Below are positions 24,425 through 51,787 of a stretch of DNA of 64,000 bases, piece after piece. Position numbers and translations under genes: made by a program. Numbering within the stretch: position 1 is the stretch's first letter; every line of letters begins with the position of its first letter. The DNA is from Antechinus flavipes (lineage: Eukaryota): NCBI RefSeq assembly GCF_016432865.1, contig NC_067403.1:247752001-247816000 (forward strand), read 5' to 3'. The notes under the pieces were generated by a model. The model worked only from the letters and a program-made list of their open reading frames with translations. It did no database searches and was not told the DNA's origin.

Positions 24425-25293
24425 CTGTGTCATTCATGAGCTCAGGATGGAATAAAGGATCAGATGCTGTATCAGTGAGAACAGTCCCCATTGCTTTGGA
24501 GGGGTATAAAGTGTGTCAAAAATTAATTTCCTTTTTTACAATAACAACTTTTTGAGGTAGCAGACATATGTGATTATCTCTATTTTATATGTGAAATATA
24601 AGAACATTCAGGAAGGTAAATGACTTTCACTCCATTCAATCACACAACTACTCTAAAAGGTCATTCAAAATCTAAATGTGGTTCTATTCCCTACTCAATT
24701 ATTCACAGAATATCCAGGGCAGGACTGGTGATACGTGATATATAAACCACATGGGAGGATCCCAGAGTTTTAGATTCTTGCTCTGACTCTACCATTCACT
24801 CAGGTTGTGCTCTTAGGTTAGAAAGTCACTTCATATGTGCCTCAGTTTCTTCATCTGTTAGCTGGAGATAATCTCTGCCCTACCTACCTTTCTCATGGGT
24901 TGTTTTTTAGAATATGAATTTCTCTGGAACAAAAAAAAACTTAAATGGAAATATCAAAGTGACACAATAGAATGGACACTGGTTTGCTAGTAGGAGAACT
25001 GAAGCCCACTTCTGCCCTTGGCTGAGTGACCCAGGAAAAGTCATTGAATGCCCTTTTAGAGTAGTTGTGTGATTGTATGGTGTGAAAGTCATTTACCTTC
25101 TTGAATGTTCTTATATTTCACAAATAAAATCATATATAAAATAGAGATATACATTTGCTACCTCAAAAGGTTGTTATTATGAGAAAGGAAAGTAATTTTT
25201 GAAACACTTTACACTCCTCCAAAGCAATGGGGACTGTTCTCACTGGTACAGCATCTGATCCTTTATTCCATCCTGAGCTCATGAATTACACAG
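24425..25293. repeat. Long inverted repeat (arms 24425-24668 and 25044-25293, 375-bp spacer)
   Basis: Core 24432-24534 matches the reverse complement of 25184-25286 with 5 mismatches in 103 nt. The inner parts align with two small indels as far as cattcaa/ttgaatg. Confidence 0.92.
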
Positions 25294-25957: not shown

Positions 25958-26187
25958 ATGGAGGAGAAACCCATCACCATGGTGTGCTCGCTGCTCTTTA
26001 CCCTGATCCTAACCCCCTTTATGTCTAGTGCTGTCCAATCTCCCTGCCAACTACCTGCCCCCAGTACCACTGAACAGCTCTCTATTGAGGGGGATGTGCT
26101 CCTTGGAGCTGTCACCCCCTTACATGCTCAGCTTGTCCGGCAGAAGGTGACTTTTCTCCAACCTCCAGAGCAGCCACCGTGCCAACA
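25958..26187 (+). CDS. V2R-like class C GPCR, exon 1 (signal peptide and N-terminus, 230 nt, ends phase 2)
   Basis: Hydrophobic signal (MVCSLLFTLILTPFMSSA), GDVLLGAVTPLH (family motif GDxxxGGxFPxH) and F..PP..PPC. Donor CA|gtaagt at 26188. Confidence 0.85.
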
Positions 26188-26473: not shown

Positions 26474-27272
26474 CGAAGGAGGGACAGACAGAAAGAAAAA
26501 AAAACTAGGAGGGATGCAAATTAGTATAAATATAATTGGAGTTGTGAGTGGCTGGGTCTTGTGAACATAGGGTTTAAGAAAGGGAAACTCTGCCCCTACT
26601 CTTTGTTTACAGATCATCTAATCTGAGGCTGGCACTTTAGAATTTCTGGCTCATAGTAACTCAATAAAAGTTAGAGGGAACCAGTGAGCTATCTATTTTA
26701 TTCTCTGTGTCCTCACCATAATCAACAATCCCTTCTACAACACTGAGGATAATATTTCATTTTTTGCTTGACCACTTCCTGTGATGAGGAAATCAACACT
26801 TTTACTAGCAGTCAGCTCCAATTTTAGACAGTTCCAGTTATTAGAGACTTCTTTCTCATGTTGTGCTCTAGTCTGCGTCCCTGTAGCTTCCATTCATCAG
26901 GTGCAGAGCTGTGTTGGGGGTCCAAGCAGAAGAGCTCCAAAACCTCTTCTATTTTGTGTCTGTTCAAATATGTGAAGACAATTATCTTCTCCCTAACACC
27001 CCCAAACAAAACAAGGCAAAATCCATTCCAAACCCAGCAATCACCTTCTGGCCCTCCCCCTTGTTTTCTTTTCTCCAAGACAAACTTCCTGGGTTTCCTT
27101 AGATAGACTTCCATCATCTTTCTGAACAGGCAATGACCTTCCTGAAGTGGGACATCCAAAATCCTAGAATTCAATTCAAATTAACATTTAAGTCCTTTGT
27201 TTGAAAGGAGGCCGAGTGGATACTGATTTCAACCTCTTCCCAAATGGTGATTTCTATAAAAAGCAAGAAAGT

Positions 27273-27470
27273 TAGATAGTTCAGTGGATAGACTACCGAG
27301 CCTCCAGGATAGAAGGCTGAATTCAAATCTGAACTAAGACACACAGTAGTCATTCAACCTCTTTTTTTGTAATTCACTGGAGAAGGAAATGGCTAACCAC
27401 TCTAGAAGTCTTGCCAAGAAAATCCCAAACAATGTCACAGAATCAGCCAGAACCGAGCCACAAATCCAAC
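27273..27470 (+). mobile_element. MAR1-type SINE
   Basis: tRNA-like head (cagtggatagact...gaattcaaatc) and RTE-like tail (ggagaaggaaatggctaaccactctag...ttgccaagaaaatccc). Confidence 0.7.
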
Positions 27471-28588
27471 TACAAAGCAGCCTTACTAGGTGTCTAAAAA
27501 GCTTTTATCAAAATTACTTCAGCAAGAGGAAAATCACTGGTTTCCTAGGCAGGTTGTGCCATTTTCTAATTGTTTGGAATTTTAGATTCTTTTTCACTAA
27601 GTCTCTATCTGCCGCCCCTCTATATTTTACCTGTAGGCTCCAATGGGGCCAAAAGTAGTGCTCCAGGTGGGGTTTGATCAGGACAGAGCACAGGAGTCTC
27701 TTTCTTTTTTACTGATGCAGCCAAACACTTCAGTTTTTCCCTGTTGCTGTGTCACATTGTTGGTTCATGTTGGTTTTAGAATCATCATAGACTTCCAAGT
27801 CCTTCTCCTTCCCAAACATTTCCATCATTTTCTACAGGTTTTTTTTTTAAACAAGAAAGAACCCTTAACTTTATGTCAACTGAATTGTATCTTGTTGAAT
27901 TTGACCCATTCTCATGATCTGACTGGTTAATAATCCTGAGTCTCATCAAAGCATATATTTTTCTTTGTTTCAGTAGCAAATTTAAGAAGTGTTATGCTAA
28001 TATTTTCATTCAAGTAATTTGTCTAGAGATGCAACAACAAAAGTAACTCATATTTAAACTACAAATGCACTTTATATATCTTGTCTCTTTTGAGTGGGCA
28101 TCCTTCTAAGGCTAGGAGAGATGAGCTGACTTCTCTTGGGTCACATAGTAAATGTGTGAAGTTGGATCTGAACCAAAAGCTTCCTCTCCCGAGCCTCAAA
28201 TTGTCTTCGCTTAATTTAGAAAATAGGAATTTAGAAATCCCCCAGTTCAGATATTCTTAACCTGGGGAATGGGGATGGAGGGTTATCTATGAATTTGTAT
28301 AGAAAAAAATCTCATTTAAATCTCACTACCTTTGGCTTCCTCTGTAATCCTATCTAGTTGTTTTATACGTTTAGAATCATTATTGTGAAAAGGATTCTGA
28401 TGATGTTTAATTATGTCATTTTTAAGATGAGGAAACTGAGACCCAGGGAGAGGGAGGGAATGACTGTTGTATCACCATAGAAATTAGAATATGTCCAGCT
28501 TATGGGAAAGGAGGGAGCTTTTCAAGATTTTATTGTTATCCAAGGCTGTGGCTACTTTGAGTCTGCTGTATTTTGTTCCTTCCTGAAG

Positions 28589-28880
28589 ATTTAAAGCTAG
28601 ATTTTTCCTGAATGCTTTGGGCATGCTATTTGCTGTGGAAGAGGCAAATAGAGACGCCAGTTTCCTGCCCAATATCACAGTGGGATTCCAGCTCTATGAC
28701 TCCTGTGTGTCTGGAACCCGGGCTCTTGGGAGCACTCTTGGTCTCCTGTCTGGACAGCTCCTCCCAACACCCAACTTTGATTGCCACCCCCAGCATCGAC
28801 TCCTGGGAATCATAGGTGGGATGACTTCCCCAGAGTCGGAGGCCATGGCTGAGCTGCTCTCTGTTTACCAAGTCTCTCAG
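28589..28880 (+). CDS. V2R-like exon 2, copy a (292 nt; RDASFLPN)
   Basis: Acceptor ttgttccttcctgaag and donor CAG|gtgagt. Translates (Q)FKARFFLNALGMLFAVEEANRDASFLPNITVGFQLYDSC...GIIGGMTSPES...YQVSQ, in frame with exons 1 and 3. Confidence 0.9.
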
Positions 28881-29645
28881 GTGAGTAATATACCTAGAGA
28901 CTTAAGCAGAGAATTCATAGGTAGAAAGATTACCTGCTCTAGTAGTTTCCTCTCTTCTCCAAGACTAAAAGCCCTTCTTTGTTCCTAAAAACCCAGGGTC
29001 ATTCCCACTCACAGTTTGGTTTGATATACTCCATGATGTAGTGAATAGGGGTCACATAATGTGACTGGAGGAGTCCCAGGAAAAAGCCCAAATAGCTTTG
29101 TGCTGGGTTTTCAATGATTCCTGACATTTTACTATTAGAAATTAATTTCTTTTCGTTACAAACTCTTAAAATGAAAATACTCCATAAAAGAATAACACCT
29201 TGAAACCATTTACCAAAAAACAATAATTGACTTTTAGATAATATTTTTAGATTTATCAAGTGTTTTCCTTACAAAAGCTTTGTGAGCTAAGTAAAGCAAG
29301 GGAAATGAATCTCATTTTACAAGTGTATAAACAAAAAACCCAGAATGTTTGTATGACTTGTTCAATGTCCATAATGGTTTTTTGGACTTTAAGCCACTTA
29401 GATTTCAACTTCATCGCTAAGCTGCCATGGGCAAAATAATCATTTAACATCACTCAGCTTCACTTTCACATCTCTAAAATAGGTATAGCAATGGCAAGTA
29501 TTTCACAGGATTATTGTGACGGTAAAATGAGATAACATGAATAAAATGCTTTAAAATCTTAAAGCACCATATACAAGTTATAGTAGTATATTATATGTAC
29601 ATATATAAATACATATATACATATGTATAAATATATATGTATATA

Positions 29646-29785
29646 TTTGGCTGAGGCAATTGGGATTAAATGACTTGCCCAGGCTCACACAGCTAGGCAG
29701 TGTTAAGTGTCTGAGGCCAGATTAGAACTCAGGTCCTCCTGACTTTAGGGCTGGTGCTCTATCCACTGTGCCACTTAGCTGTTTC
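29646..29785 (-). mobile_element. WSINE1-type SINE with 15-bp TSD; tail converted to an AT microsatellite (also present in unit B at 33865-34004)
   Basis: Antisense WSINE1 body. TSD agtagtatattatat at 29582-29596 and 29786-29800. Confidence 0.88.
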
Positions 29786-30962
29786 AGTAGTATATTATAT
29801 TTATACATAACATATAGTATGATAGTAATTTACTATATTTATATTATATTCAATGACACCCATATTTTATTTAATATTATATTTTATTGATATATTTAAT
29901 ATTATATTATATTTAATGTTACATTTATTAGTGATTAATTATATAAATGTCAAATAATAGTAATTTATTATATTTTTATTATATTTAACTACATCAATAT
30001 TTTATTTAATATTATATTTTATTAATGCATTTAATAGTTTAATATTGTATTAATTTAATGTTGTATTTATTAATAATTAAATTACATCATTATAAAATCA
30101 AATAAATTTGTATGAGTTAATTTTAGAGCAAGTAACACATGGGCCTCTTGTTTCCAGGTTCAGTATTTCTTTATACCATATCAGCATCAGGTTTATAAAG
30201 CTGCATTAAAGAATATGCATAAGAATTTTTGAGTCTTTTGCAACGATGCTAGGATTTGCAGAGGCTGTAATTCCCAGAATGCCCATCAATGGAGTGAGTT
30301 GGATTGGGAATAGGAACTTGGTAGAGGTTGGCTCTGGAGAATAGCTGGTGGCAAGGATTCCACAATTAGCTATATGAACTTGCACTCTTAGGGATAAGAG
30401 CCAGGAGGAAGCTGAGAGATAGGCCGATCCAACTTCCTTATTTTTCAGAACAGAGAGCTGCTATAATTTCCCAAGGTCACATGGGTAGTAAATAGGAGAG
30501 TTGAGCTTCAAGCCCATATGCTAGACTCTAAATCCAGGTTTTTCTCACTGCTTCACAAAGACCTCTCCATGCTAGGGATATTCAGATGACCTTATAGTGT
30601 CTTTACACACTCAGTGATCTCTAATGACTTCTTATTGCTTGTACAAAAAAGTTCATGTTCTTTTCTTCTATTTAATTTTTAAATCTGGACCCTAGCCACC
30701 TAAATCAGTCAGTCAATCAAAAAAGCATTAATAAGCACCAGCTATATTCCAAGAGTTGGAGTTGCCAGTACAAAGATTGGAAAAAATCTGTATTCTCAGG
30801 GGGGCAAGCATTCTAAAAAGGAAGATGAACATATCTCTATCTCTATCCATATCCATATCTCTATCTCTATCCATATCCATATCTCTATCTATCTATGAGT
30901 ATATACGTAATATATACAAAGAGGACAAATGCAAATGAATATAAACTAGTTACATTATATAG

Positions 30963-31208
30963 AGCTACTAGGCAGTGCAGTGGAAAGAGAACTGTGCTTG
31001 GAGCCAGAAAGACTATCTTCCTGAGTTCAAATCCAGGCTCAAACAAATGCTTGATTGGGTCAAATTCCTTAACCATTTTTGCCTCAGCTTTCTCATCTGT
31101 AAAATGAGATGGAGAAGGAAATGGCAAACCATTCCACTATCTTTGCCAAGAAGACCCTAGGTAGGGTCATGGAGAGTTGGACATAATTGAGATGATACAA
31201 CAACAAAA
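30963..31208 (+). mobile_element. MAR1-type SINE (also present in unit B at ~35158-35404)
   Basis: Head ctaggcagtgcagtggaaagag...gagttcaaatcc, core cctcagctttctcatctgtaaaatg, tail ggagaaggaaatggcaaacc...caacaacaaaa. Confidence 0.8.
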
Positions 31209-31235
31209 TAACATATATAACTATTCTATTTATAA

Positions 31236-31276
<41 letters not shown>

Positions 31277-31370
31277 TGTAAGAGAGAGAAAGTATGAGAG
31301 AGAGGAGAAAGGACTTGCTCTTCCCTCTCTTCTCCCTTTATCAGTCATAGTCTCTTACAACTCTTATTTA

Positions 31371-31519
31371 TTTATTTTTGATTATAGCTTTTTATTTACA
31401 AGTTATATGCATGGGTAATTTTACAGCATTGACAATTGCCAAACCTTTTGTCCCAATTTTTCCTCTCCTTCCCCCCATCCCTTCCCCTAGATGGCAGGTT
31501 GACCAATACATGTTAAATA
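31371..31519 (-). mobile_element. 5'-truncated L1 3' end with 15-bp TSD (also present in unit B)
   Basis: Antisense marsupial L1 tail (ttatagctttttatttacaagttatatgcatggg...agatggcaggttgacc). TSD tacaactcttattta at 31356-31370 and 31520-31534. Confidence 0.85.
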
Positions 31520-31868
31520 TACAACTCTTATTTACCCTGTAGGAGATGCTGCATCCAGGAGGGAGCATAGTGAAGCAGACAGAGTTGGGAAGCAGGAAGA
31601 ATCAGGAAGCAGCTCCAAGTTCTATCGCCAGAGAATAGAATTGATAATGCCTTTCTGTTTATCCCTAGAACTCAACACAAGGCCTGGAACATATTAGATG
31701 CTTATTAAGTGTTTGTTGGCTGACCGAGTATAGATTTAAAAGCAAACTTTCCCTGAGTCACAGAGAGAAACATCATAAAGCTATTGAGCTTGTGGAAGAA
31801 CAGTGGTGAATTCCTAATAAGAGGAAAGACACTGGGACCCCACATGCTGGGAGGAACGGATTTTCCTT

Positions 31869-34800
31869 GGCCAAAAGTAGTGCTCCAGGTGGGGTTTGAT
31901 CAGGACAGAGCACAGGAGTCTCTTTCTTTTTTACTGATGCAGCCAAACACTTCAGTTTTTCCCTGTTGCTGTGTCACATTGTTGGTTCATGTTGGTTTTA
32001 GAATCATCATAGACTTCCAAGTCCTTCTCCTTCCCAAACATTTCCATCATTTTCTACAGTTTTTTTTTTAAACAAGAAAGAACCCTTAACTTTATGTCAA
32101 CTGAATTGTATCTTGTTGAATTTGACCCATTCTCATGATCTGACTGGTTAATAATCCTGAGTCTCATCAAAGCATATATTTTTCTTTGTTTCAGTAGCAA
32201 ATTTAAGAAGTGTTATGCTAATATTTTCATTCAAGTAATTTGTCTAGAGATGCAACAACAAAAGTAACTCATATTTAAACTACAAATGCACTTTATATAT
32301 CTTGTCTCTTTTGAGTGGGCATCCTTCTAAGGCTAGGAGAGATGAGCTGACTTCTCTTGGGTCACATAGTAAATGTGTGAAGTTGGATCTGAACCAAAAG
32401 CTTCCTCTCCCGAGCCTCAAATTGTCTTCGCTTAATTTAGAAAATAGGAATTTAGAAATCCCCCAGTTCAGATATTCTTAACCTGGGGAATGGGGATGGG
32501 GGGTTATCTATGAATTTGTATAGAAAAAAATCTCATTTAAATTTCACTACCTTTGGCTTCCTCTGTAATCCTATCTAGTTGTTTTATACATTTAGAATCA
32601 TTATTGTGAAAAGGACTCTGATGATGTTTAATTATGTCATTTTTAAGATGAGGAAACTGAGACCCAGGGAGAGGGAGGGAATGACTGTTGTATCACCATA
32701 GAAATTAGAATATTTCCAGCTTATGGGGAAGGAGGGAGCTTTTCAAGATTTTATTGTTATCCAAGGCTGTGGCTACTTTGAGTCTGCTGTATTTTGTTCC
32801 TTCCTGAAGATTTAAAGCTAGATTTTTCCTGAATGCTTTGGGCATGCTATTTGCTGTGGAAGAGGCAAATAGAGACCCCAGTTTCCTGCCCAATATCACA
32901 GTGGGATTCCAGCTCTATGACTCCTGTGTGTCTGGAACCCGGGCTCTTGGGAGCACTCTTGGTCTCCTGTCTGGACAGCTCCTCCCAACACCCAACTTTG
33001 ATTGCCACCCCCAGCATCGACTCCTGGGAATCATAGGTGGGATGACTTCCCCAGAGTCGGAGGCCATGGCTGAGCTGCTCTCTGTTTACCAAGTCTCTCA
33101 GGTGAGTAATATACCTAGAGACTTAAGCAGAGAATTCATAGGTAGAAAGATTACCTGCTCTAGTAGTTTCCTCTCTTCTCCAAGACTAAAAGCCCTTCTT
33201 TGTTCCTAAAAACCCAGGGTCATTCCCACTCACAGTTTGGTTTGATATACTCCATGATGTAGTGAATAGGGGTCACATAATGTGACTGGAGGAGTCCCAG
33301 GAAAAAGCCCAAATAGCTTTGTGCTGGGTTTTCAATGATTCCTGACATTTTACTATTAGAAATTAATTTCTTTTCGTTACAAACTCTTAAAATGAAAATA
33401 CTCCATAAAAGAATAACACCTTGAAACCATTTACCAAAAAACAATAATTGACTTTTAGATAATATTTTTAGATTTATCAAGTGTTTTCCTTACAAAAGCT
33501 TTGTGAGCTAAGTAAAGCAAGGGAAATGAATCTCATTTTACAAGTGTATAAACAAAAAACCCAGAATGTTTGTATGACTTGTTCAATGTCCATAATGTTT
33601 TTTTGGACTTTAAGCCACTTAGATTTCAACTTCGTCGCTAAGCTGCCATGGGCAAAATAATCATTTAACATCACTCAGCTTCACTTTCACATCTCTAAAA
33701 TAGGTATAGCAATGGCAAGTATTTCACAGGATTATTGTGAAGGTAAAATGAGATAACATGAATAAAATGCTTTAAAATCTTAAAGCACCATATACAAGTT
33801 ATAGTAGTATATTATATGTACATATATAAATACATATATACATATATATATATATATGTATATATTTGGCTGAGGCAATTTGGATTAAATGACTTGCCCA
33901 GGCTCACACAGCTAGGCAGTGTTAAGTGTCTGAGGCCAGATTAGAACTCAGGTCCTCCTGACTTTAGGGCTGGTGCTCTATCCACTGTGCCACTTAGCTG
34001 TTTCAGTAGTATATTATATTTATACATAACATATAGTATGATAGTAATTTACTATATTTATATTATATTCAATGACACCCATATTTTATTTAATATTATA
34101 TTTTATTGATATATTTAATATTATATTATATTTAATGTTACATTTATTAGTGATTAATTATATAAATGTCAAATAATAGTAATTTATTATATTTTTATTA
34201 TATTTAACTACATCAATATTTTATTTAATATTATATTTTATTAATGCATTTAATAGTTTAATATTGTATTAATTTAATGTTGTATTTATTAATAATTAAA
34301 TTACATCATTATAAAATCAAATAAATTTGTATGAGTTAATTTTAGAGCAAGTAACATATGGGCCTCTTGTTTCCAGGTTCAGTATTTCTTTATACCATAT
34401 CAGCATCAGGTTTATAAAGCTGCATTAAAGAATATGCATGAGAATTTTTGAGTCTTTTGCAACGATGCTATGATTTGCAGAGGCTGTAATTCCCAGAATG
34501 CCCATCAATGGAGTGAGTTGGATTGGGAATAGGAACTTGGTAGAGGTTGGCTCTGGAGAATAGCTCATGGCAAGGATTCCACAATTAGCTATATGAACTT
34601 GCACTCTTAGGGATAAGAGCCAGGAGGAAGCTGAGAGATAGGCCGATCCAACTCCCTTATTTTTCAGAACAGAGAGCTGCTATAATTTCCCAAGGTCACA
34701 TGGGTAGTAAATAGGAGAGTTGAGCTTCAAGCCCATATGCTAGACTCTAAATCCAGGTTTTTCTCACTGCTTCACAAAGACCTCTCCATGGTAGGGATAT

Positions 34801-35431
34801 TCAGATGACCTTATAGTGTCTTCACACACTCGGTGATCTCTAATGACTTCTTATTGCTTCTACAATAAAGTTCATGTTCTTTTCTTCTATTTAATTTTTA
34901 AATCTGGACCCTAGCCACCTAAATCAGTCAGTCAATCAAAAAAGCATTAATAAGCACCAGCTATATTCCAAGAGTTGGAGTTGCCAGTACAAAGATTGGA
35001 AAAAATCTGTATTCTCAGGGGGGCAAGCATTCTAAAAAGGAAGATGAACATATCTCTATCTCTATCCATATCCATATCTCTATCTATCTATGAGTATATA
35101 TGTAATATATACAAAGAGGACAAATGCAAATGAATATAAACTAGTTACATTATATAGAGCTACTAGGCAGTGAAGTGGAAAGAGAACTGTGCTTGGAGCC
35201 AGAAAGACTCATCTTCCTGAGTTCAAATCCAGGCTCAAACAAATGCTTGATTGGGTCAAATCCCTTAACCATTTTTGCCTCAGCTTTCTCATCTGTAAAA
35301 TGAGATGGAGAAGGAAATGGCAAACCATTCCACTATCTTTGCCAAGAAGACCTTAGGTAGGATCATGGAGAGTTGGACATAATTGAGATGATACAACAAC
35401 AAAATAACATATATAACTATTCTATTTATAA

Positions 35432-35490
<59 letters not shown>

Positions 35491-36087
35491 TATGAGAGAG
35501 AGGAGAAAGGACTTGTTCTTCCCTCTCTTCTCCCTTTATCAGTCATAGTCCCTTACAACTCTTATTTATTTATTATTTTTGATTATAGCTTTTTATTTAC
35601 AAGTTATATGCATGGGTAATTTTACAGCATTGACAATTGCCAAACCTTTTGTTCCAATTTTTCCTCTCCTTCCCCCATCCCCTCCCCTAGATGACAGGTT
35701 GACCAATACATGTTAAATATACAACTCTTATTTACCCTGTAGGAGATGCTGCATCCAGGAGGGAGCATAGTGAAGCAGACAGAGTTGGGAAGCAGGAAGA
35801 ATCAGGAAGCAGCTCCAAGTTCTATCACCAGAGAATAGAATTGACAATGCCTTTCTGTTTATCCCTAGAACTCAGCACAAGGCCTGGAACATATTAGATG
35901 CTTATTAAGTGTTTATTGGCTGACCGAGTATAGATTTAAAAGCAAACTTTCCCTGGAAATTGTAAGTTGAGTCACAGAGAGAAACATCATAAAGCTATTG
36001 AGCTTGTGGAAGAACAGTGGTGAATTCCTAATAAGAGGAAAGACACTGGGACCCCACATGCTGGGAGGAACGGATTTTCCTTGGCCA
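31869..36087 (+). repeat. Tandem duplication 1, unit B (contains exon 2b)
   Basis: Collinear with unit A. Differs by scattered SNPs, microsatellite length, a 24-bp repeat-unit difference (30831 vs 35050) and a 14-bp indel (gaaattgtaagttg at 35956). Confidence 0.97.
32810..33101 (+). CDS. V2R-like exon 2, copy b (292 nt; RDPSFLPN)
   Basis: Splice sites are identical to copy a. The only exonic difference is G28656 vs C32877 (Ala vs Pro); Pro fits the family pattern NRxPxLLPN. Confidence 0.9.
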
Positions 36088-36925
36088 TATGTGTTCCTCA
36101 CTACCATTGTACTCAAAGTGATCACCCTTCCCACTGGTACTGTGTGTATTTGTGAGTTTGTGAGCCAGATTTTTTGTTAGGAATACTCAGCAGCTACTGT
36201 CCTCACCGTGCTTAGTAAAGCTTACCAGCTTGCTAAAGGCCTTGAGCTAATATATAATTAGCTACTGGTTGACTATTGAAAGTGAATTTACTAGCTTGTG
36301 AACTCTAACTTTAGGAAGGCAGACCCATGGGTCTGTGGTCCCAACTTACAAACTTGAGTTCTCAATGATAATTCCAGGATGGGGGAGAGGGGACACGACA
36401 AGGCATTCATGGAAGAGTTGTTTAAACAATAATGCCTTCTATTTTTATTTTTATTTTAGAACTTTTAGGTTTGCAAATTATGATTTTCTCAACTCTAGCA
36501 GTTAGGTAGTAATTGTATTACTACTATTGCTGCTGCTGCTGCTATTATTACTACTATTACTATTACTAACTTTAGGCACATAGCCCACATTATCTCATTT
36601 AAGTCACAATATTTCTATGGGACGGATTCTATTATTATTCTCATTTTAGAAATGGGGAAACTGAGGCTGAGAAAAAGTTAAGTAACTTGCCCACAATCAT
36701 TCAGCCATGGATTTACGTACAAGCTTTCCTGACTCCAGATTCAGAACTATTCTCTTTGCCCTCTTGCTCCCTCTAGCTCTAGTTTATGGATGAAACTGTG
36801 AAGAATGGTGAAAATAGATCAAGGTTTAAATTCCCAGGTAGCTACTTGGAGGTTTCAGGAAATATGAAGCCATATGCTGTTTTTTTTTCCTGGCCAGGAA
36901 CATTTGGCCCTTTTTCTTTCTCCAG

Positions 36926-37750
36926 ATAAGTCATGGATCTCAACATCCCCAATTTTCTGACCACCACCGGTTCCCGTCCTTCCTTCGCACAGTCCCCAGC
37001 AGAGTCCACCAACCTCAGGCCATGGCTAAAATACTTCTCTACTTCAACTGGACCTGGGTGGGCCTGGTAGGATCAGATAGCGGTGCCTTTGAGTGGCTGG
37101 ACCAGGAATTCCGGAAGGAAGTCGGAAAGAACGGCGGCTGCGTGAGCTTCTCGAAGAGGATCGATGGCCACATCAATCACGTGGGTGATGTGGCTGATGC
37201 CATCTGGAATTCCACTGCCAAGGTAATCGTCTGTGACTGCTACCACATCCACTTCGTTCTCCTTGCCAAGGCCCTTCAAGAGAAGAATATGACCAACAGA
37301 ATCTGGCTCATGTCCACTTCTTTTTTACCAGATGCCTCAGTATTGAATAGAGAAGCCAGAGAGATGCTAAATGGGAGTCTGTCTCTGGGGATACACTCTG
37401 GACCAATACCTGGCTTCAAGCACTTCCTGTCCACTCTGCATCCAGCCATGTATCCAGACAACCACTTGGTAAAGCTATTTTGGCAAGAACTGTTGGGCTG
37501 TACCTGGTCTGGGCCAATGTCTATTGATAGTCAAGCAGGATATGTTATCCAAAATTGCACAGGATTAGAGCAGCTGACACAACTCCATCTATCTGTACTG
37601 AATCTGGATGACTTGACCGCTACATACCAAGCCTACCTGGCAGCCAAAACCTTCCTGGTGGCCTATCAGAATCTGAGGGCCTGCTCTCCTGGGGAAGGAC
37701 CATTTACTGGTAGCAATTGTACCAGGACAGAAGATGCCAGACCATGGCAG
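36926..37750 (+). CDS. V2R-like exon 3 (825 nt, Venus flytrap core)
   Basis: Acceptor tttttctttctccag. Translates ISHGSQHPQFSDHHRFPSFLRTVP...FNWTWVGLV...PGFKHFL...RPWQ. Donor CAG|gtgaga. Open throughout, phase 0/0. Confidence 0.93.
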
Positions 37751-38444: not shown

Positions 38445-38672
38445 TTTTTGCACTATCTAAAGGCTGTCTGCTTCACTACTCGAGCCCAGGAAGAGATCTT
38501 CTTTACCCAGGATGGAGAGATCCCAGCGATTTTTGATGTAGTGAATAATTACCTTGCTCTTAACCATAGTTTGCAGACTGCCAAAGTTGGACACTTAGAC
38601 TTCAGGGAGCCTCCAGGGAAAGAGCTGGTGATAAATAGCAGTACTATCATTTGGGCTGAGGGTCCTGGAAAG
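38445..38672 (+). CDS. V2R-like exon 4 (228 nt)
   Basis: Acceptor tgtttttgcctcag. Translates FLHYLKAVCFTT...IFFTQDGEIPAIFDVVN...KVGH...LVINSSTIIWAEGPGK. Donor AAG|gtgaga. Confidence 0.92.
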
Positions 38673-38925
38673 GTGAGAACCAAAATCCATTCTCTTCTGC
38701 TGCTCTCCTTTAATAATAGTGCCAACTAATTAGGGGAAGGAAGTAATTCTGGGACTCAGTCATTACATTTTAACTCCAAGTATGTACCACTGGAATTTCC
38801 TCCATTAGTGAGAACTCCGAAAAGTACAAATTTGGGAACTCCTGAAAATTACTTATTTTATACATGCTGTTAGGTTACCTCTAAACTTAACTCAGTTCTC
38901 TTTTTTTCTTTCTGCCTTTGAGTAG

Positions 38926-39049
38926 GTCCCTCTTTCAGTTTGCAGCAAAACATGTCCTTTGGGAACCCGGAAGTCAGTTATTCAGGGGCAACCAAGCTGC
39001 TGCTACCAGTGTCTTCACTGCCCAAAAGGAGAAATAGCCTATATCTCAG
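38926..39049 (+). CDS. V2R-like exon 5, copy a (124 nt, cysteine-rich domain)
   Basis: VPLSVCSKTCPLGTRKSVIQGQPSCCYQCLHCPKGEIAYIS. The 124-nt length is canonical for CaSR/V2R. AG/GT sites are intact; ends phase 1. Confidence 0.95.
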
Positions 39050-40554
39050 GTAAGGAAGACAGGAGAATGGTGGGACCATTTAGACCCCAAGCAACTATGG
39101 AGCTAGATTCAGGATGAGAGCATTATGGAACTAGTTGAAGAAGTAAGTTGGTTGAAAGTGAGAAGAGTCAGATGGGAGAAATGGAAAAAAATAATACTAG
39201 TAACTTCTGATGGGAAAAAGACAAAAAACATGAAGATATCGTTCACAGAATTTCACAGTTGGAAGGATTGTAGTGGATTTCTAGTCTGGTCCATACTTAG
39301 GAATTTTTTTTAAAGCAACATATCTGAAAAGTCATCATTCAGTCATTTCTTGAAGGTTTCCTTCTGGCAAGAGTTGAAAATCTAGTTTAAAATGAGCCAA
39401 AGAACTTGGAAGATGTGGTTCAAATCCAAGTTTTATTTTGAAGTAGTATGTTAAAATATAGCATGTTATGATCAGAATCCAAAAGGATTTCAATTGGCTT
39501 GAATGGTGGATTGAAATTGTCAAGTCAAAAAACATTTATTCAATCCATACTATGTGCCAGGTACTGTGTAAAGTTAATAAGGGAAAGTGCTTTAAAATTA
39601 TAATAGCTAATAATAATATTATTTATATAGCACTTACTATGTGCTAGGCATTGGGCTAAATGGGCTATTGTGCTCCTCATTTTACAGATAAAGAAATTGA
39701 GGCAAACAGAGGTTGTGACTTGCCCAGGGTCACAATAGATGGAAAGGATCTGAGATCAAATTTGAACTCAAATGCTTGTGACTCCAGCACCAGCTCTCTA
39801 TAGCTGTCTCAAATACAGAACTTGAGTCTAAAAGATCAATTGAACAAATGCAGGATAGGACAGAAAAAGTTAGAAGGCAATTCATGTTAAAAAAAAACCC
39901 CAGAGGTTTTACTGCACCAAGTGAGCAAAAAGCAGCAAGCATTATTAAGTGGAGTCTGTGTGTCAGGTATAGTGACCGTGAGCACAGTATTATGTGATAA
40001 CAAAAAAGCAAATAGGAATTAAGGTTGCTTTTACAGGAATTTTGATAACAAGGGAAGCTGGTAGTTGTGAATCCTTGTGATCCTTACTGCTAGGGAGGGC
40101 AAAGCTAGGGAATTGCTTGAATTCAGGAGTTCAGAGAGCTGCAAATAGGATCAAGGTATCCAGAACAACTGATGTCAGCCCCAATATGATAAGCCTCTGG
40201 AAGTAAAAACCTTCTGGTTATCTAAGGAGAGAAAAACTGGCCCAGGTAGAAAAAATGGAGCAGGTTAAAGCTTCTATGCTGATCAGTATTGGGATTAGAC
40301 CAATAAGATTGTATTTTCAACCTGGACATTGAAGAGATTAAATTAAATTTCCTAAAAATGCTTAAAATTTCTGGTGAACTGAAGTTATAACAAGAGCCAG
40401 CAATATCATATGGCAGTCATCACAATGTGATGAAAATATATACTGCTTTGACAAGAGGAAGGGAAGATTTACTTGAGGAAGGAAAAGTTCTCCCAGTGGG
40501 AAAAATCTTTCTCTTCTCACTTCCTATATGCGACTTACCCCAAATCTCTTTCAG

Positions 40555-41462
40555 ACAGTGCCAGTTGCCTGAAGTGCCCAGAGGACCAATGGCCAAACAA
40601 TGAAAAGGATCAGTGCATCCCTAAGATCCGTGATTTCCTCTCCTACACGGAGCCCCTGGGCATGGCTTTAGCCTTCTGTACAACCTTTCTCTTCCTCCTT
40701 TCTCTGACCATCCTTGGCACATTCATACGGCATCATCATACTCCCATAGTTAGAGCCAACAACCGCAGGCTAAGTTACATCCTTCTCTGTTCCCTGGCAC
40801 TATGCTTCCTCTGCCCATTCATGTTCATTGGCCACCCAGTACCCCTGACCTGTGCCCTGCGCCAGGCAGCCTTTGGGATTTTCTTCACAGTCTGTGTGTG
40901 TGCCACTCTGGCCAAGACCATCATTGTTGTGTCTGCCTTCAGGGCCACCAGACCAGATGCCAGACTCAGGAAGTGGGCAGGACCACGTCTCCCCAGTGCC
41001 GTCCTCATTGGCTTCTCCTTGGTCCAAGTTGTTCTGTGTATGTTCTGGGTCATTGGCTGGCCTCCGGTGCCCGTGAACTCGACAGAAGCAGGACCCACGG
41101 TCACCATGCTGTGTGGTGCAGGCTCCTCAGAGTTTTTCTATATCATGCTGGGCTACTTGGGCTTCCTGGCCCTGGTCAGTCTGGTGGTGGCCTTCCTGGC
41201 CCGGCAACTGCCTGACACTTTCAATGAAGCCAAGCACATCACCCTCAGCATGTTAGTCTTCTCCTGTGTCTGGATCGCCTTCATCCCAGCTCACCTGAGC
41301 GCTCAGGGCAAGGACACTGTGGCTGTGGAGATCTTTGCTATTTTAGCATCTGGGGCAGGCCTGATGTGCTGTTTGTTCTTCCCTAAGTGCTACATCATCC
41401 TGCTACGGCCTGAGAAGAACACAAAGGACCAAATGAGGGGCAATCGTCATTTCAAGAAATGA
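40555..41462 (+). CDS. V2R-like exon 6, copy a (end of CRD and the 7TM domain, 908 nt to stop)
   Basis: Acceptor tctctttcag. Translates (D)SASCLKCPEDQWPN...CIPK...TPIVRANN...LAKT...LPDTFNEAK...FFPKCYIILLRPEKN with a short C-tail. Completes 9 CRD cysteines and an 868-aa protein. Confidence 0.95.
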
Positions 41463-41718
41463 AACCCAAACCAGTCCTTCTATTTTTCTCATCATAGATG
41501 GGAGGGAAGATTCTCAGCATTTCCTAGCTCCCTCCAAGCTATTTTTGTGCCATGAAAGGGCCAGTATCTCATCTTGATACCTGGCTATCATTGATACATA
41601 CCATGGGTTTTCTCTCCTAGACTGGAACATTTCCTCTTTACTTTTAAGCCAATCCAAATCTTACCAGTCCTTCAGGCCCATCTAAAATATTCCCTTCAAT
41701 TATGAAGCTTCTGATTAC

Positions 41719-41950
41719 TGTTGCTCAGTCATCAATCATTTCTGACTCTATGTGACCTGTGGACATTTGTGCATAGGGTTTTCTTAGCAAAGGTACAGTA
41801 GTGGCTTGTTATTTCATTTTCCAGTGTGTTATCATTTTCACAGATGAAAAACTGAGGCAAATAGAGTTTGTAACTTTTCTAAGGTCATACGATTTCATAA
41901 GTGTCTGAGGCCACATTTGAACTTAGATCACGACTTCAGGCTCTGCACTG
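41719..41950 (-). mobile_element. MAR1-type SINE in the 3' flank (copy at ~45391-45620)
   Basis: Antisense tail (tgttgctcagtcat...ctgactctatgtgacc...ttttcttagcaaag) and core (acagatgaaaaactgaggc). Confidence 0.7.
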
Positions 41951-42160
41951 GCTGCAGTCTTCCCTGACCACTTAAATTTCCATTGATGACTTATATACCT
42001 TTTATTAACATCAAATATGGAGCTTAAACATTCTCAAATAGTTGCATGTATCCTAGAACTGCCTATTGGACTACTAGGTGAACTTCATAAGAGTAAGCAC
42101 CAATATTTCATCTATATCCATTTCAGTATTTGGTCCAGAGTTGGGTACCAGTAGATGTTC

Positions 42161-42166
42161 AATAAA
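42161..42166 (+). terminator. Candidate polyadenylation signal for exon 6a (second copy at 45837-45842 for exon 6b)
   Basis: First AATAAA after the stop codon. It lies in an L2-terminus-like context (agtagatgttcaataaat) and is followed by a GT-rich tract (tgtttattgtttatgttgt). Confidence 0.5.
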
Positions 42167-42264
42167 TCCCTGTTTATTGTTTATGTTGTACTTGTGACAC
42201 ACTCTTCTCATATATGTGGACACCAGGAAAACTATTCCAGTTTTAGATATCTTTTTGGTTTTTA

Positions 42265-42384
42265 CTTGCTCTTAACCATAGTTTGCAGACTGCCAAAGTT
42301 GGACACTTAGACTTCAGGGAGCATCCAGGGAAAGAGCTGGTGATAAATAGCAGTACTATCATTTGGGCTGAGGGTCCTGGAAAG
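42265..42384 (+). pseudogene. 5'-truncated copy of exon 4 (lacks the native acceptor, keeps the donor)
   Basis: Begins mid-exon at CTT GCT CTT AAC. One change, CCT>CAT (Pro>His). Donor AAG|gtgaga is retained. Confidence 0.85.
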
Positions 42385-42637
42385 GTGAGAACCAAAATCC
42401 ATTCTCTTCTGCTGCTCTCCTTTAATAATAGTGCCAACTAATTAGGGGAAGGAAGTAATTCTGGGACTCAGTCATTACATTTTAACTCCAAGTATGTACC
42501 ACTGGAATTTCCTCCATTAGTGAGAACTCAGAAAAGTACAAATTTGGGAACTCCTGAAAATTACTTATTTTATAAATGCTGTTAGGTTACCTCTAAACTT
42601 AACTCAGTTCTCTTTTTTTCTTTCTGCCTTTGAGTAG

Positions 42638-42761
42638 GTCCCTCTTTCAGTTTGCAGCAAAACATGTCCTTTGGGAACCCGGAAGTCAGTTATTCAGGGG
42701 CAACCAAGCTGCTGCTACCAGTGTCTTCACTGCCCAAAAGGAGAAATAGCCTATATCTCAG
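42638..42761 (+). CDS. V2R-like exon 5, copy b (124 nt, identical to copy a)
   Basis: Nucleotide-identical to 38926-39049 with intact splice sites. Whether it is used is unknown. Confidence 0.75.
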
Positions 42762-44226
42762 GTAAGGAAGACAGGAGAATGGTGGGACCATTTAGACCCC
42801 AAGCAACTATGGAGCTAGATTCAAGATGAGAGAATTATGGAACTAGTTGAAGAAGTAAGTTGGTTGAAAGTGAGAAGAGTCAGATGGGAGAAATGGAAAA
42901 GAATAATACTAGTAACTTCTGATGGGAAAAAGACAAAAAACATGAAGATATCGTTCACAGAATTTCACAGTTGGAAGGATTGTAGTGGATTTCTAGTCTG
43001 GTCCATACTTAGGAATTTTTTTAAAGCAACATATCTGAAAAGTCATCATTCAGTCATTTCTTGAAGGTTTCCTTCTGGCAAGAGTTGAAAATCTAGTTTA
43101 AAATGAGCCAAAGAACTTGGAAGATGTGGTTCAAATCCAAGTTTTATTTTGAAGTAGTATGTTAAAATATAGCATGTTATGATCAGAATCCAAAAGGATT
43201 TCAATTGGATTGAATGGTGGATTGAAACTGTCAAGTCAAAAAACATTTATTCAATCCATACTATGTGCCAGGTACTGTGTAAAGTTAATAAGGGAAAGTG
43301 CTTTAAAATTATAATAACTAATAATAATATTATTTATATAGCACTTGCTATGTGCTGGGAAAGAAACTGAGGCAAACAGAGGTTGTGACTTGCCCAGGGT
43401 CACAATAGATGGAAAGGACCTGAGGTCAAATTTGAACTCAAATGCTTGTGACTCCAGCACCAGCTCTCTGTAGCTGTCTCAAATACAGAACTTGAGTCTA
43501 AAAGATCAATTGAACAATTGCAGGATAGGACAGAAAAAGTTAGAAGGCAATTCATGTTAAAAAAAAAAGACCCAGAAGTTTTAGTGCACTAAGTGAGCAA
43601 AAGGCAGCAAGCATTATTAAGTGGAGTCTGTGTGTCAGGTATAGTGACCATGAACACAGTGTTATGTGATAACAAAAAAGCAAATAGGAATTAAGGTTGC
43701 TTTTACAGGAATTTTGATTACAAGGGAAGCTGGTAGTTGTGAATCCTTGTGATCCTTGCTGCTAGAGAGAGCAAAGCTAGGGAATTGCTTGAGTTCAGGA
43801 GTTCAGAGAGATGCAAATAGGATCAAGGTATCCAGACCAACTGACATCAGCCCCAATATGACAAGCCTCCAGAAGTAAAGACCTTCTGGTTACCTAAGGA
43901 GAGAAAAACTGGCCCAGGTTAGAAAAATGGAGCAGGTTAAAGCTTCTATGCTGATCAGTATTGGGATTAGACCAATAAGATTGTATTTTCAACCTGGACA
44001 TTGAAGAGATTAAATTAAATTTCCTAAAAATGCTTAAAATTTCTGGTGAACTGAAGATATAACAAGAGCCAGCAATATCATATGGCAGTCATCACAATGT
44101 GATGAAAATATATACTGCTTTGACAAGAGGAAGGGAAGATTTACTTGAGGAAGGAAAAGTTCTCCCAGTGGGAAAAATCTTTCTCTTCTCACTTCCTATA
44201 TGCGACTTACCCCAAATCTCTTTCAG

Positions 44227-45134
44227 ACAGTGCCAGTTGCCTGAAGTGCCCAGAGGACCAATGGCCAAACAATGAAAAGGATCAGTGCATCCCCAAGATC
44301 CGTGATTTCCTCTCCTACACGGAGCCCCTGGGCATGGCTTTAGCCTTCTGTACAACCTTTCTCTTCCTCCTTTCTCTGACCATCCTTGGCACATTCATAC
44401 GGCATCATCATACTCCCATAGTCAGAGCCAACAACCGCAGGCTAAGTTACATCCTTCTTTGTTCCCTGGCGCTATGCTTCCTCTGCCCATTCATGTTCAT
44501 TGGCCACCCAGTACCCCTGACCTGTGCCCTGCGCCAGTCAGCCTTTGGGATTTTCTTCACAGTCTGTGTGTGTGCCACTCTGGCCAAGACCATCATTGTT
44601 GTGTCTGCCTTCAGGGCCACCAGACCAGATGCCAGACTCAGGAAGTGGGCAGGACCAAGTCTCCCCAGTGCCGTCCTCATTGGCTTCTCCTTGGTCCAAG
44701 TTGTTCTGTGTATGTTCTGGGTCATTGGCTGGCCTCCGGTGCCCGTGAACTCGACAGAAGCAGGACCCACGGTCACCATGCTGTGTGGTGCAGGCTCCTC
44801 AGAGTTTTTCTATGTCATGCTGGGCTACTTGGGCTTCCTGGCCCTGGTCAGTCTGGTGGTGGCCTTCCTGGCCCGTCGATTGCCTGACACCTTCAACGAA
44901 GCCAAGCACATCACCCTCAGCATGTTGGTCTTCTCCTGTGTCTGGATCTCCTTCATCCCAGCCCACCTGAGCGCTCAGGGCAAGGACACTGTGGCTGTGG
45001 AGATCTTTGCTATTTTAGCATCTGGGGCAGGCCTGATGTGCTGTTTGTTCTTCCCTAAGTGCTATATCATCCTGCTACGGCCTGAGAAGAACACAAAGGA
45101 CCAAATGAGGGGCAATCGTCATTTCAAGAAATGA
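44227..45134 (+). CDS. V2R-like exon 6, copy b (alternative 7TM terminal exon)
   Basis: Intact acceptor and open frame. Differs from 6a by 16 nt (11 synonymous, 5 nonsynonymous: A>S, R>S, I>V, Q>R, A>S). Whether it is used is unknown. Confidence 0.75.
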
Positions 45135-48100
45135 AACCCAAACCAGTCCTTCTATTTTCCTCATCATAGATGGGAGGGAAGATTCTCAGCATTTCCTAGC
45201 TCCCTCCAAGCTCTCTTTGTGCCATGAAAGGGCCAGTATCTCATCTTGATACCTGGCTATCATTGATACATGCCATGGGTTTCCTCTCCTAGACTGGAAC
45301 ATTTCCTTTTTACTTTTAAGCCAATCCAAATCTTACCAGTCCTTCAGGCCCATCTAAAATATTCCCTTCAATTATGAAGCTTCTGATTACTGTTGCTCAG
45401 TCATCAATCATTTCTGACTCTATGTGACCTGTGGACATTTGTGCATAGGGTTTTCTTAGCAAAGGTACAGTAGTGGCTTGTTATTTCATTTTCCAGTGTG
45501 TTATCATTTTCACAGATGAAAAACTGAGGCAAATAGAGTTTGTAACTTTTCTAAGGTCATACGATTTCATAAGTGTCTGAGGCCACATTTGAACTTAGAT
45601 CACGACTTCAGGCTCTGCACTGGCTGCAGTCTTCCCTGACCACTTAAATTTCCATTGATGGCTTATATACCTTTTATTAACATCAAATATGGAGCTTAAA
45701 CATTCTCAAATAGTTGCATGTATCCTAGAACTGCCTATTGGACTACAAGGTGAACTTCATAAGAGTAAGCACCAAATTTTATTTCATCTATATCCATTTC
45801 AGTATTTGGTCCAGAGTTGGGTACCAGTAGATGTTCAATAAATCCCTGTTTATTGTTTATGTTGTACTTGTGACACACTCTTCTCATATATGTGGACACC
45901 AGGAAAACGATTCCAGTTTTAGATATCTTTTTGGTTTTTACTTACTCAAAACTATAGATTATGACCCTCTGGGGGTATTTGTACTTTTACTAGTCAGCTA
46001 GAGGATGTATAAACAGTTCAACATAAAGGGATTTATTTAGTGAAATAGTATTGTATAATATAGAGAAGAAGAAATTGAATCCTACTCCACGAACTTGGGG
46101 CACATTCACTCTAAACATGTCCATGTGTTGTTATGACACACATTTGAAGGAGTAACTCATGTTCCTGATAATATATTTGTACTGTTCACATAGGACTTAT
46201 TCCTCCCTAGGAATGATATCTCCATTTTTATTGTAGTTTCTGAGTATCTTTTTATCCCTAGTATATGGGTTTCATTTCTTGTAACATCTATTGGACATTG
46301 ACTTCTATTTACGATAGTAACTAAAAAGAGCTTCTCTTCAAAAGGGGAGGCTGTCAATTCTTTAGGGATATTCATAATCATATGGTAGTTAGGAACCACT
46401 GTTTATTACCCAAGATACAAGAGGCAGGTAGAATTTTTTTCTGGATATGATTATTGTATTCTTTTACTAACTTGTTTCAACTTGCACATCCACCATTTTT
46501 GTCCCAAGCTTTTTACTAATACAGCATTGGGAAATTTTTGAAGTTCCCATGAATTCCTGGTTGCCGGTTTTCATTCCCCTTTAAACCAGTTTAGGGTCCA
46601 TATTTTAATAAGCCCCAAATGACCACGAGAATCTGAAGTAGTATGGCTTTCTTGGACTGCCTCCAAATCCTCTGAGTCTGCCATACAAATGAATGAGCAG
46701 GGGAAAACAAAAATCTGAAAGTATCATCCTTTACTTTAAGCCCTTTGTTCCAAATTTCTGCCTTTCACATGCAAGTCTCCCAGGCTTTAAATTTCTTGGA
46801 ATTTTTTTTTTGTTTATTTAGAAAAAAATGATTGGCTGTGAGTTCTCCTTGTGAAATATTTTGAAAATATGGATTGTGAAAAACAGATGGTGTTAGAGAT
46901 CAAACGTGGGTTTGAGCCTTGGGGCCACCACTTAGTAACTTTGTGATTTTCAACAGGTCACTATTCATTGAGCTTGTTTCCCCATCTATTAAATGAAAAG
47001 AATCTTAATTGTGTTTTCTGCCTCCTGTGATAATCATTGTGATGATTATATGACATAATTATGTGAAACATTTTGTAAAGCTTAAACACTAGATTAATAT
47101 CCACTAGATCTTTAGCTTTCTTGATTTTTCTTCATTGATTTGCCTTCATTTTGCCCAACTATTGTTGCACAATAGAGCTTCCTAAGATTGGATAAACTGT
47201 GAGTGGAAAAAAATTGATTCTCAGAGATGGGGAAGGAATAAGTGCATCTAATGAATCTGAATTCATAGGATCATCAGATTATAAATCTAGTGTTAGAAGA
47301 GATTTAAAAAGGTATCTAGATCCCCTCCCCAATTTTACACATAAAACACATTCCTTACACATAAAGAAGTTAAGATGAATAGATTTTAAATGATTTATTC
47401 AGGATTAGGCAGCTAGTAAGGGTCAGAGACAAGATTTGAAAAGATGTGTTGCTGATTGCAATTTCAACATTCTATCCATTATGGCAAGGCAATTTCCCTG
47501 CTCTCAGAAGGTTAAAGGTTCAGACTTTGGCTTAAATGACACACTTAGTTTACAATATCACCAAAAGGTACAGGAACATTAACAATCAACATGATGGAAA
47601 ATTGTACCCATAACAGTTTTAGTTGGATATAATTCCCCTGGTCTTTCTCAGTCCCTCACAAAGACTCATTCTAGATACTTGTAGTAACAACTCTATGAAT
47701 AGTGAAGGTATCCCTAGATCAAAGGAATAATCATTTTCTCCTTTTGCTTGCTGTTATCCTCTATGATGTTTCATGCTGTAACCTGGGCCTCAGTGGATCA
47801 ATTGTCAAACTAGGATGTACTTTGGAGCTATATGTCTACAGATGTTCCCTCTCTTCTATTTTATGAGATTGTTTTTTTTTTTTTTGGGATTCCCATTAAG
47901 CCTTGTTTTCCTTATCTGATCTAATTAAATTATTACTGTGATTTCCTGCCTTGGAAATGTACCCTTAATATAGTAATTAAGACTTTGTCCGGGTGGAAAA
48001 ATATGTAGATTTGTGATCATGGCCAGTTCTCACTAAGAATCCCTTTCTCTTTAGCCTTAGCCTAGTGAGAACTCAGACAGCCAGTAAAACAAAGAATAGT

Positions 48101-50836: not shown

Positions 50837-51787
50837 CTAGAGACAGCTTTTCTTGGAGAAGACATTTCTTGTGAGTACTTTTGTCAGGGCCCCTTTCATC
50901 TCACTATTCCTTAGTGTGTAAATTATGGGGTTGAGAAGAGGAGTACCTAGTGTATACACCAGTGAAAGCAACTGGTCCTTCTTGGGGGAATAGCTCGAGT
51001 TTGGCCGAAGGTACATGAACATGCAGCAACCATACTGTAGGAGGACCACCATGAGGTGGGAGGAGCAGGTAGAGAAAGCCCGGCGGCGGCCTGATGTTGA
51101 ATGGATGCCCAATATGGCAATCGTAATGAGGGCATAGGAAATAGCAATGAGGAGAAAGGGGAAGGCGATGGCCAGTGTGCCTGCCACCAGCACTGAGAGC
51201 TCAGGGAGACGGCTGCGGGTGCAGGTCAGTCGCATCACTGGGGGTACATCACAGAAGAAGTGCTCAATGCTTCTGGAATGGCAAAAAGGCAAGCAGAAGA
51301 TAAAGGCCACCAGCTGTAAGGATAGGATGAAACCAATGGCTATGGAGGCCACCACCAGGTTGACACAGAGCTTCTGAGTCATGATCAAGGGGTACTGTAG
51401 GGGATAGCAGATTGCCACGTAGCGGTCATAGGCCATAACAGCCAATAGGAAGCAGTCAGTGCTACCAAGCCCAATGAAAAATAGCATCTGGGTAGCACAA
51501 CCCAGAAATGTAATGGCTTTATGCCTCTTCATGGTGTTCACCAGGATGTGGGGAACCACTGTTGCAGTGTACCAGATCTCCACAATGGACAGACTGCCTA
51601 GGAAGTAGTACATTGGTGTGTGGAGACGGGCTTCCATCTGAATGGCAGCCACTATAAGGATATTTCCTGTGAGGATCATGGTGTAGACTAGACTGATCCC
51701 CAAGAAAACCAAGACCTGCAGCTCTGGGTGTGTAGGATAAGCTAGGAATACAAACTCTGTTGATAGTGTTTGGTTCACCCAAGTCAT
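50837..51787 (-). CDS. OR10W1: Olfactory receptor OR10W1-like, 316 aa, intact
   Basis: OR motifs are intact ([40 protein letters not shown]). [24 protein letters not shown] and SLVYTLGTP match recalled human OR10W1. The acceptor lies 17 nt before the ATG (cag at 51805-51807). Confidence 0.93.

Follow-up and report, generated by a model that had tools for sequence, protein, structure and literature searches.

In a human survey, 60% of mutually exclusive exon clusters had an exon length not divisible by 3, and some of them showed reads that join the two exons (PMC5740500). For the origin of such pairs, Ivanov and Pervouchine proposed in 2018 that two selectors for one dock arise automatically once an arm of an intronic stem is duplicated (PMC6071210). 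In human DMD, a frame-shifting tandem duplication of exon 2 truncates the protein, and the removal of one copy restores the normal transcript (PMC3982197). Here, we analyze a class C (V2R) receptor gene of the marsupial Antechinus flavipes in which exon 2 stands twice, as exons 2a and 2b. The gene lies in a stretch of 64,000 nucleotides (nt) of RefSeq assembly GCF_016432865.1 (contig NC_067403.1, positions 247,752,001 to 247,816,000, forward strand), which we refer to as the window and whose own positions serve as coordinates throughout. On balance, we lean towards a reading in which a young, lineage-specific tandem duplication would give mostly double-inclusion transcripts, subject to nonsense-mediated decay (NMD), and thereby reduce an otherwise intact receptor gene to a null or weak allele.

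A duplicated exon that shifts the frame

The exon 2 pair is carried by two copies of a 4.2-kb unit, here called duplication A. The first copy (27647-31868, plus strand, as are all features of the gene) measures 4222 nt and comprises 942 nt of intron 1, exon 2a (28589-28880, 292 nt) and 2988 nt of intron 2; the second (31869-36087) abuts it directly and contains exon 2b (32810-33101, 292 nt). The repeat of exon 2 is not a matter of chance, as both exons sit inside a perfect head-to-tail duplication. In a self-comparison of the window, the two copies differ by 39 substitutions over 4194 aligned sites and by eight internal indels, six of which fall in simple repeats. The 5-bp motif GGCCA is found at the start of the unit (27647-27651), at the junction of the copies (31869-31873) and just past the end of the unit (36083-36087). 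Junction microhomology of this type is the usual mark of replication-type tandem duplication, and it is to such a microhomology-mediated event that we attribute duplication A.

Around this unit, the gene has the canonical six-exon V2R layout, with exons of 230, 292, 825, 228, 124 and 908 nt, borders taken directly from the sequence and GT-AG introns throughout. Exon 1 (25958-26187, 230 nt) begins at the ATG at 25958, encodes a signal peptide and ends two bases into a codon, as CA/gtaagt (the slash marks the exon border). Exon 3 (36926-37750, 825 nt) runs from phase 0 to phase 0 and is followed by exon 4 (38445-38672, 228 nt), exon 5a (38926-39049, 124 nt), which encodes the cysteine-rich linker, and exon 6a (40555-41462, 908 nt, including the TGA), which encodes the 7tm_3 domain and is the terminal exon of the RefSeq model. 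The Venus-flytrap ligand-binding domain ANF_receptor (Pfam PF01094) is recognized in exon 2a (4.4e-11), exon 2b (1e-11) and exon 3 (1.8e-17). The linker domain NCD3G (PF07562) is known through the record of the dunnart orthologue P0281, whose 90% cluster also holds the RefSeq protein of the A. flavipes gene.

We identify the gene as the A. flavipes orthologue of opossum Vmn2r616 (NP_001093040.1, P0126). Exon 3 matches the opossum protein at 80% identity over all 275 residues, the next single-domain match reaching 49%, and the opossum protein used as a query returns one orthologue in each marsupial species. Genomic loci were compared in the fat-tailed dunnart (L001) and in the Tasmanian devil, the latter from two assemblies (L005 and L006); the DNA of the gene is 93-97% identical to the dunnart and devil orthologues, and exon 1 alone is 92-93% identical.

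The frame arithmetic of the initial annotation of this locus holds throughout. Both copies of exon 2 are 292 nt long, take their first base to complete the last codon of exon 1 and leave in phase 0; because 292 leaves a remainder of 1 when divided by 3, the frame is shifted whenever both copies are included or both are skipped. Splicing 2a to 2b reads CAG/ATT TAA, with a premature stop at 32813-32815 and a product of 175 codons, and splicing exon 1 to exon 3, with both copies skipped, reads CA/A TAA, with a stop at 36927-36929. Only single inclusion gives a receptor: the reading frame of 868 codons is obtained from a message in which exactly one of the two copies has been skipped. The initial annotation had also stressed that these stops are immediate; their positions stand, but such early stops do not exceed chance, and no special meaning attaches to them. 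The shifted frame of exon 2b contains seven stops in 97 codons, and the TAA at 32813-32815 stems from a synonymous TTC>TTT change; the sequence of devil and dunnart would instead give a stop at codon 4. With shifted frames rich in stops and the TAA due to a synonymous change, the immediate stop as a designed feature is ruled out.

The stop of the 2a-2b product lies 286 nt upstream of the junction of exon 2b with exon 3, and that of the exon 1-exon 3 product lies 821 nt upstream of the next junction; three to four more junctions follow downstream. By the 50-55 nt rule for NMD, which is established knowledge, both wrong products should be NMD-competent, the decay itself being what we infer.

Exons 2a and 2b are identical at 291 of 292 bases, and from position -81 at the acceptor to +496 at the donor, this single exonic base is the only difference between the copies. 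The change, G28656C, places Ala in 2a and Pro in 2b. Pro is kept in devil, dunnart and opossum, which makes the Ala of 2a the derived state, and the Pfam score is 44.9 bits for 2b versus 42.9 bits for 2a; the replacement is a hint, no more, that 2a may be the less constrained copy. Both copies share the acceptor ttcctgaag/, with an off-consensus purine at -3, just as first described. The suggestion that this weak acceptor might favor skipping has lost ground, since the AAG acceptor also serves the single-copy exon of the devil (ttcctgaag/) and the dunnart (ttcctcaag/). As judged from these orthologues, it is the ancestral acceptor of a normally included exon and is not tied to the duplication; a weak acceptor as an adaptation to the duplication is ruled out on that ground.

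Two physical mechanisms of exclusion are likewise ruled out. Steric hindrance applies where the donor lies under about 50 nt from the branch point (PMC5740500), whereas the intron between the copies has the 3929 nt originally reported. Incompatibility of U2 and U12 sites fails too, both copies having a U2-type aag/ acceptor and a /gtgagt donor.

That annotation based on open reading frames would miss the problem had been predicted, and this was borne out in an unexpected manner: RefSeq bridges the frame shift by means of a cryptic acceptor inside exon 2b. The RefSeq protein XP_051822789.1 (P0399, 902 residues) is built from exon 1 starting at its second ATG (25979), the whole of exon 2a, the final 123 nt of exon 2b (32979-33101, entered through a cryptic cag/ acceptor at 32976-32978), and exons 3, 4, 5a and 6a. 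As a result, its residues 168-208 repeat residues 127-167, a 41-residue in-frame repeat within the ligand-binding domain. It falls in the 90% cluster of the dunnart protein together with the devil orthologue P0398. We regard XP_051822789.1 as probably a frame-preserving choice made by the gene predictor, and its 41-residue repeat as a probable artefact that makes the gene look intact.

Age of the duplication, a second tandem repeat and the surrounding locus

Fat-tailed dunnart and devil, the latter in both assemblies, have one exon 2, one exon 6 and no tandem repeat in this gene. Because the devil and dunnart loci are single-copy, the duplications are placed after the split between Antechinus and the devil, and both arose on the Antechinus side. 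At noncoding sites, the copies of unit A are separated by a Jukes-Cantor distance of 0.0099, and those of the unit of a second duplication, B, described below, by 0.0204; the corresponding distances to the devil are 0.071 and 0.060, so that the copy-to-devil ratios are 0.14 and 0.34. Derived changes in unit A are interspersed on both copies (22 versus 15). A published timetree separates A. flavipes from A. argentus and A. stuartii at 5.9 million years and Antechinus from Murexia at 11 million years (PMC9290055). Duplication A is probably confined to A. flavipes or the species nearest to it.

The copies of unit A have not diverged evenly along their length. The 5' 1.7 kb (27647-29376), which include exon 2, show seven copy-to-copy differences and 110 relative to the devil, whereas the 3' 2.5 kb (29377-31868) show 32 and 160, respectively (Fisher p=0.007 for the two parts), and two stretches of 631 nt and about 720 nt show none between the copies. 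A slow local mutation rate does not explain this, since the unit is uniformly distant from the devil throughout; the simplest reading, which the pattern suggests, is that gene conversion has acted between the copies. The exon 2 pair itself gave no significant sign of purifying selection (one difference against 2.7 expected, P about 0.25).

In intron 2 of the devil (L005 11015-11062, present also in L006), we observed a 48-nt copy of exon 2 nt 146-193 embedded in an AT microsatellite. It lies about 760 nt downstream of exon 2, covers the cryptic acceptor used by RefSeq and is absent from Antechinus and dunnart.

Duplication B affects the 3' end of the same gene. Its first copy (38549-42261) takes in the 3'-terminal 124 nt of exon 4, all of exons 5a and 6a and about 800 nt of 3' flank; the second (42262-45957) consists of a partial copy of exon 4 (42262-42384) without an acceptor, exon 5b (42638-42761) and exon 6b (44227-45134). 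The second copy holds no annotated gene, exons 5b and 6b carry no annotation, and a word search on exon 6 found no short separate protein model for this cassette. The copies differ by 67 substitutions over 3670 sites, with an imperfect TTAC(C)TT microhomology. Both terminal exons match 7tm_3 (PF00003; 5e-76 for 6a and 1e-75 for 6b), each within a single exon. Their 16 differing sites are divided into 11 synonymous and five nonsynonymous changes (omega about 0.14, binomial P=0.0002); polarized with devil and dunnart, 6a has seven synonymous and three nonsynonymous changes, and 6b has four and two, respectively. Both twins thus look constrained, though only 6a is annotated.

Taken as a whole, duplications A and B differ in divergence (Fisher p=0.0008), which speaks against a simple simultaneous origin. 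No significant difference (p=0.35) separates unit B (2.0%) from the 3' part of unit A (1.6%), and a single complex duplication with later gene conversion may have given rise to both.

In the devil, a neighboring Vmn2r615-like paralogue (L002 16752-17659) and the orthologue (L005 17990-18897) are 97% identical in exon 6 and 86% identical in exon 3, which suggests concerted evolution of the seven-transmembrane exon between these paralogues.

The window contains no N and, at up to 3 mismatches, no Alu core; from position 15979 on, it matches A. flavipes record CM028222.1 (GCA_016432865.2) at every base, and a human origin is ruled out. It has four intact olfactory receptor open reading frames around the single V2R gene: 1209-2201 (minus strand), 17192-18127 (plus), 50837-51787 (minus) and 62592-63575 (minus). 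Among these neighbors, the olfactory receptors of 311 and 316 residues are kept in the devil and that of 316 residues also in the dunnart, whose locus has a 309-residue gene upstream; this common neighborhood supports the orthology with Vmn2r616. An inverted repeat of ~250 nt and 89% identity (24425-24668 and 25044-25293) lies 0.7-1.5 kb upstream of the V2R start codon. An Rfam scan of the window at gathering thresholds gave no match.

Predicted transcripts and competing explanations

Starting from what the sequences show, namely the structure, the frame arithmetic, the single-copy state of the relatives, an acceptor that is ancestral and the work-around in the annotation, we infer the splicing outcome and NMD as follows. 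With identical signals, both copies of exon 2 would be defined as exons, and the acceptor of 2b would be transcribed about 4 kb before that of exon 3, so that 1-2a-2b-3 would be the default product. This message would stop after 175 codons and then enter NMD. Assuming independent inclusion of the copies, each with probability p, the productive share would be 2p(1-p), which amounts to 2% at p=0.99 and 18% at p=0.90 and has a maximum of 50%. NMD would act in this scheme as a filter and not as a selector, and would not be enough to make a working system of the pair; the locus would represent an NMD-policed exon pair in its raw initial form instead of an evolved mutually exclusive system. The initial annotation had offered two readings, a hypomorphic or null allele and exclusivity enforced by NMD. 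The former fits better; NMD removes wrong products but does not create single inclusion. Our preference for a null or weak allele follows from the 99.7% identity of the copies, their shared splice signals, the absence of the duplication from devil and dunnart, and the lack of any sign of regulated choice.

Several points weigh against a null or weak allele. All exons, exon 2 in its two copies and all splice sites are intact after a divergence of roughly 0.5-0.8% per lineage. About 1.6-2 disabling changes would be expected under neutrality, and the probability of finding none is about 0.15-0.2, which is not significant; for this reason, intactness is not accepted as proof of function. A long-tolerated null would be a little surprising in a gene whose orthologue is conserved across marsupials. 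Purifying selection is seen in the exon 6 twins since duplication B, the older of the two, and inverted pairs of short interspersed elements (SINEs) could, in predicted structures, loop out one copy of exon 2. Finally, the tissues covered by the published A. flavipes RNA-seq exclude vomeronasal and olfactory tissue (PMC9290055).

The best placed of the alternatives, although we consider it unlikely, is that exons 2a and 2b already form a newborn mutually exclusive pair: one copy would be regularly looped out or skipped, the receptor would carry either Ala (2a) or Pro (2b), NMD would clear the remainder and the gene would be functional. The two exons have the formal properties of such a pair, namely equal length (292 and 292 nt), the same phases, homology (291/292) and a length not divisible by 3, and they belong to a fully intact gene with a conserved orthologue. 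The locus also has the dock and selector layout predicted from tandem duplication. One SINE-derived candidate dock in intron 1 (27246-27382) lies outside unit A and has a complementary stretch behind each exon copy, at 29645-29799 for 2a and at 33864-34018 for 2b; its predicted duplexes have energies of -82 and -81 kcal/mol, with z about -4.5 versus shuffles. A second candidate dock, derived from SINE/MIR sequence (36585-36799), lies in intron 2 before exon 3, likewise outside the unit, and is complementary to 29444-29540 and 30946-31120 in the first copy and to 33665-33761 and 35141-35315 in the second; its predicted duplexes range from -65 to -110 kcal/mol, with z about -9 (overall range -4.5 to -9.5). 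According to these models, pairing of 27246-27382 with 29645-29799 would loop out 2a, and pairing of 36585-36799 with either 30946-31120 or 29444-29540 would loop out 2b. However, these arms are SINE copies that match imperfectly (66-71% over 84-170 nt), of a kind frequently met in any marsupial intron, and looping out of both exons by the same dock is possible as well, so we treat the modeled pairings as a lead, not as evidence.

The remaining observations are divided in a similar way. The exon-proximal 1.7 kb are more alike between the copies, relative to devil divergence, than the rest of the unit, which counts for an exclusive pair, but neutral gene conversion explains the homogenized stretch equally well, and the exon 2 copies are not significantly conserved. 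With one residue between them, the copies offer nothing to choose between; their splice signals are identical, and the duplication is missing in devil and dunnart. A broader version of the same idea, which we hold to be less likely again, sees in the locus a snapshot of the birth of alternative splicing, in which the pair would already be used singly through the SINE dock and selectors together with NMD and, combined with exons 6a and 6b, would yield up to four receptor forms.

That the tandem arrangement is an assembly artefact, with the two haplotypes of a heterozygous individual laid end to end and the animal itself having a normal single exon 2, strikes us as improbable. The assembly was made from PacBio continuous long reads (CLR) with canu correction, wtdbg2 and pilon, and its description names no haplotig-purging step (PMC9290055). 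The raw PacBio reads are deposited at CNGB under CNP0001147, and BGISEQ reads of both A. flavipes males under PRJNA565840. This pipeline and the high heterozygosity reported for the species (PMC9290055) speak for an artefact, and allelic differences would likewise produce the synonymous excess in exon 6. Against it stand the gap-free contig and the fact that this one gene underwent two separate events, both with microhomology at the junction; reads of at least 10 kb, which span the 4.2-kb unit; and copies that differ by 1-2% plus indels, or 14-34% of the distance to the devil, which is very high for alleles. Direct abutment of the copies, microhomology at the junction, the absence of a gap and independent divergence of the copies are what a genuine duplication leaves behind. 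A search with the junction-spanning open reading frame (31784-32068) for independent contigs gave no match and is uninformative.

Least probable is that the RefSeq isoform is the real product, with full 2a joined through the cryptic border 32978/32979 to the final 123 nt of 2b and a genuine 41-residue repeat: XP_051822789.1 is built exactly so, and the cryptic site has a C at -3 and a pyrimidine-rich run, but 2a has the identical site too, as do the single-copy orthologues, whose models pass it by, the authentic acceptor of 2b lies upstream and is the same as that used for 2a, and the isoform is most simply a frame-saving choice of the predictor made without tissue-matched RNA.

Comparison with known systems

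What we describe is a known kind of gene damage, masked by public annotation. The locus provides a clean natural example of a frame-shifting tandem duplication of an exon soon after its origin, in a state that evolutionary models take as the start of mutually exclusive splicing and that human genetics knows as a loss-of-function lesion. Counts of intact chemoreceptors derived from RefSeq models such as this one would score a possibly dead gene as functional.

Within its own family, the gene resembles the V2R/Vmn2r receptors, of which opossum Vmn2r616 is an example, in its six exons and in the succession of ANF_receptor, cysteine-rich linker and 7tm_3; it differs from the Vmn2r616 orthologues by its two intragenic tandem duplications. 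The closest counterpart of the lesion is the duplication of DMD exon 2 (PMC3982197), which is also intragenic and head-to-tail, has intronic breakpoints, involves a frame-shifting exon 2 and truncates the product upon double inclusion; in the A. flavipes gene too, dropping one copy would bring back the normal message. The A. flavipes duplication, however, lies in a chemosensory receptor of the reference genome of a wild marsupial, and its copies have diverged by about 1%.

Mutually exclusive pairs policed by frame shift and NMD, such as FGFR2 IIIb/IIIc (PMC5740500), likewise consist of adjacent homologous exons of equal length and phases, not divisible by 3, with premature stops when both are included or both are skipped, and with an origin in tandem duplication. 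The A. flavipes copies, in contrast, are 99.7% identical, have the same splice signals and are not common to devil and dunnart. NMD of the wrong products is predicted here from arithmetic. Finally, the arrangement of inverted SINEs recalls the dock and selector systems of Dscam and ATE1 (PMC6071210) in having one arm outside the unit and the other duplicated with it, here on both sides of the exon pair. Its arms are diverged SINE/MIR copies and not the conserved, dedicated elements of Dscam and ATE1, and some of their predicted pairings would remove both exons.

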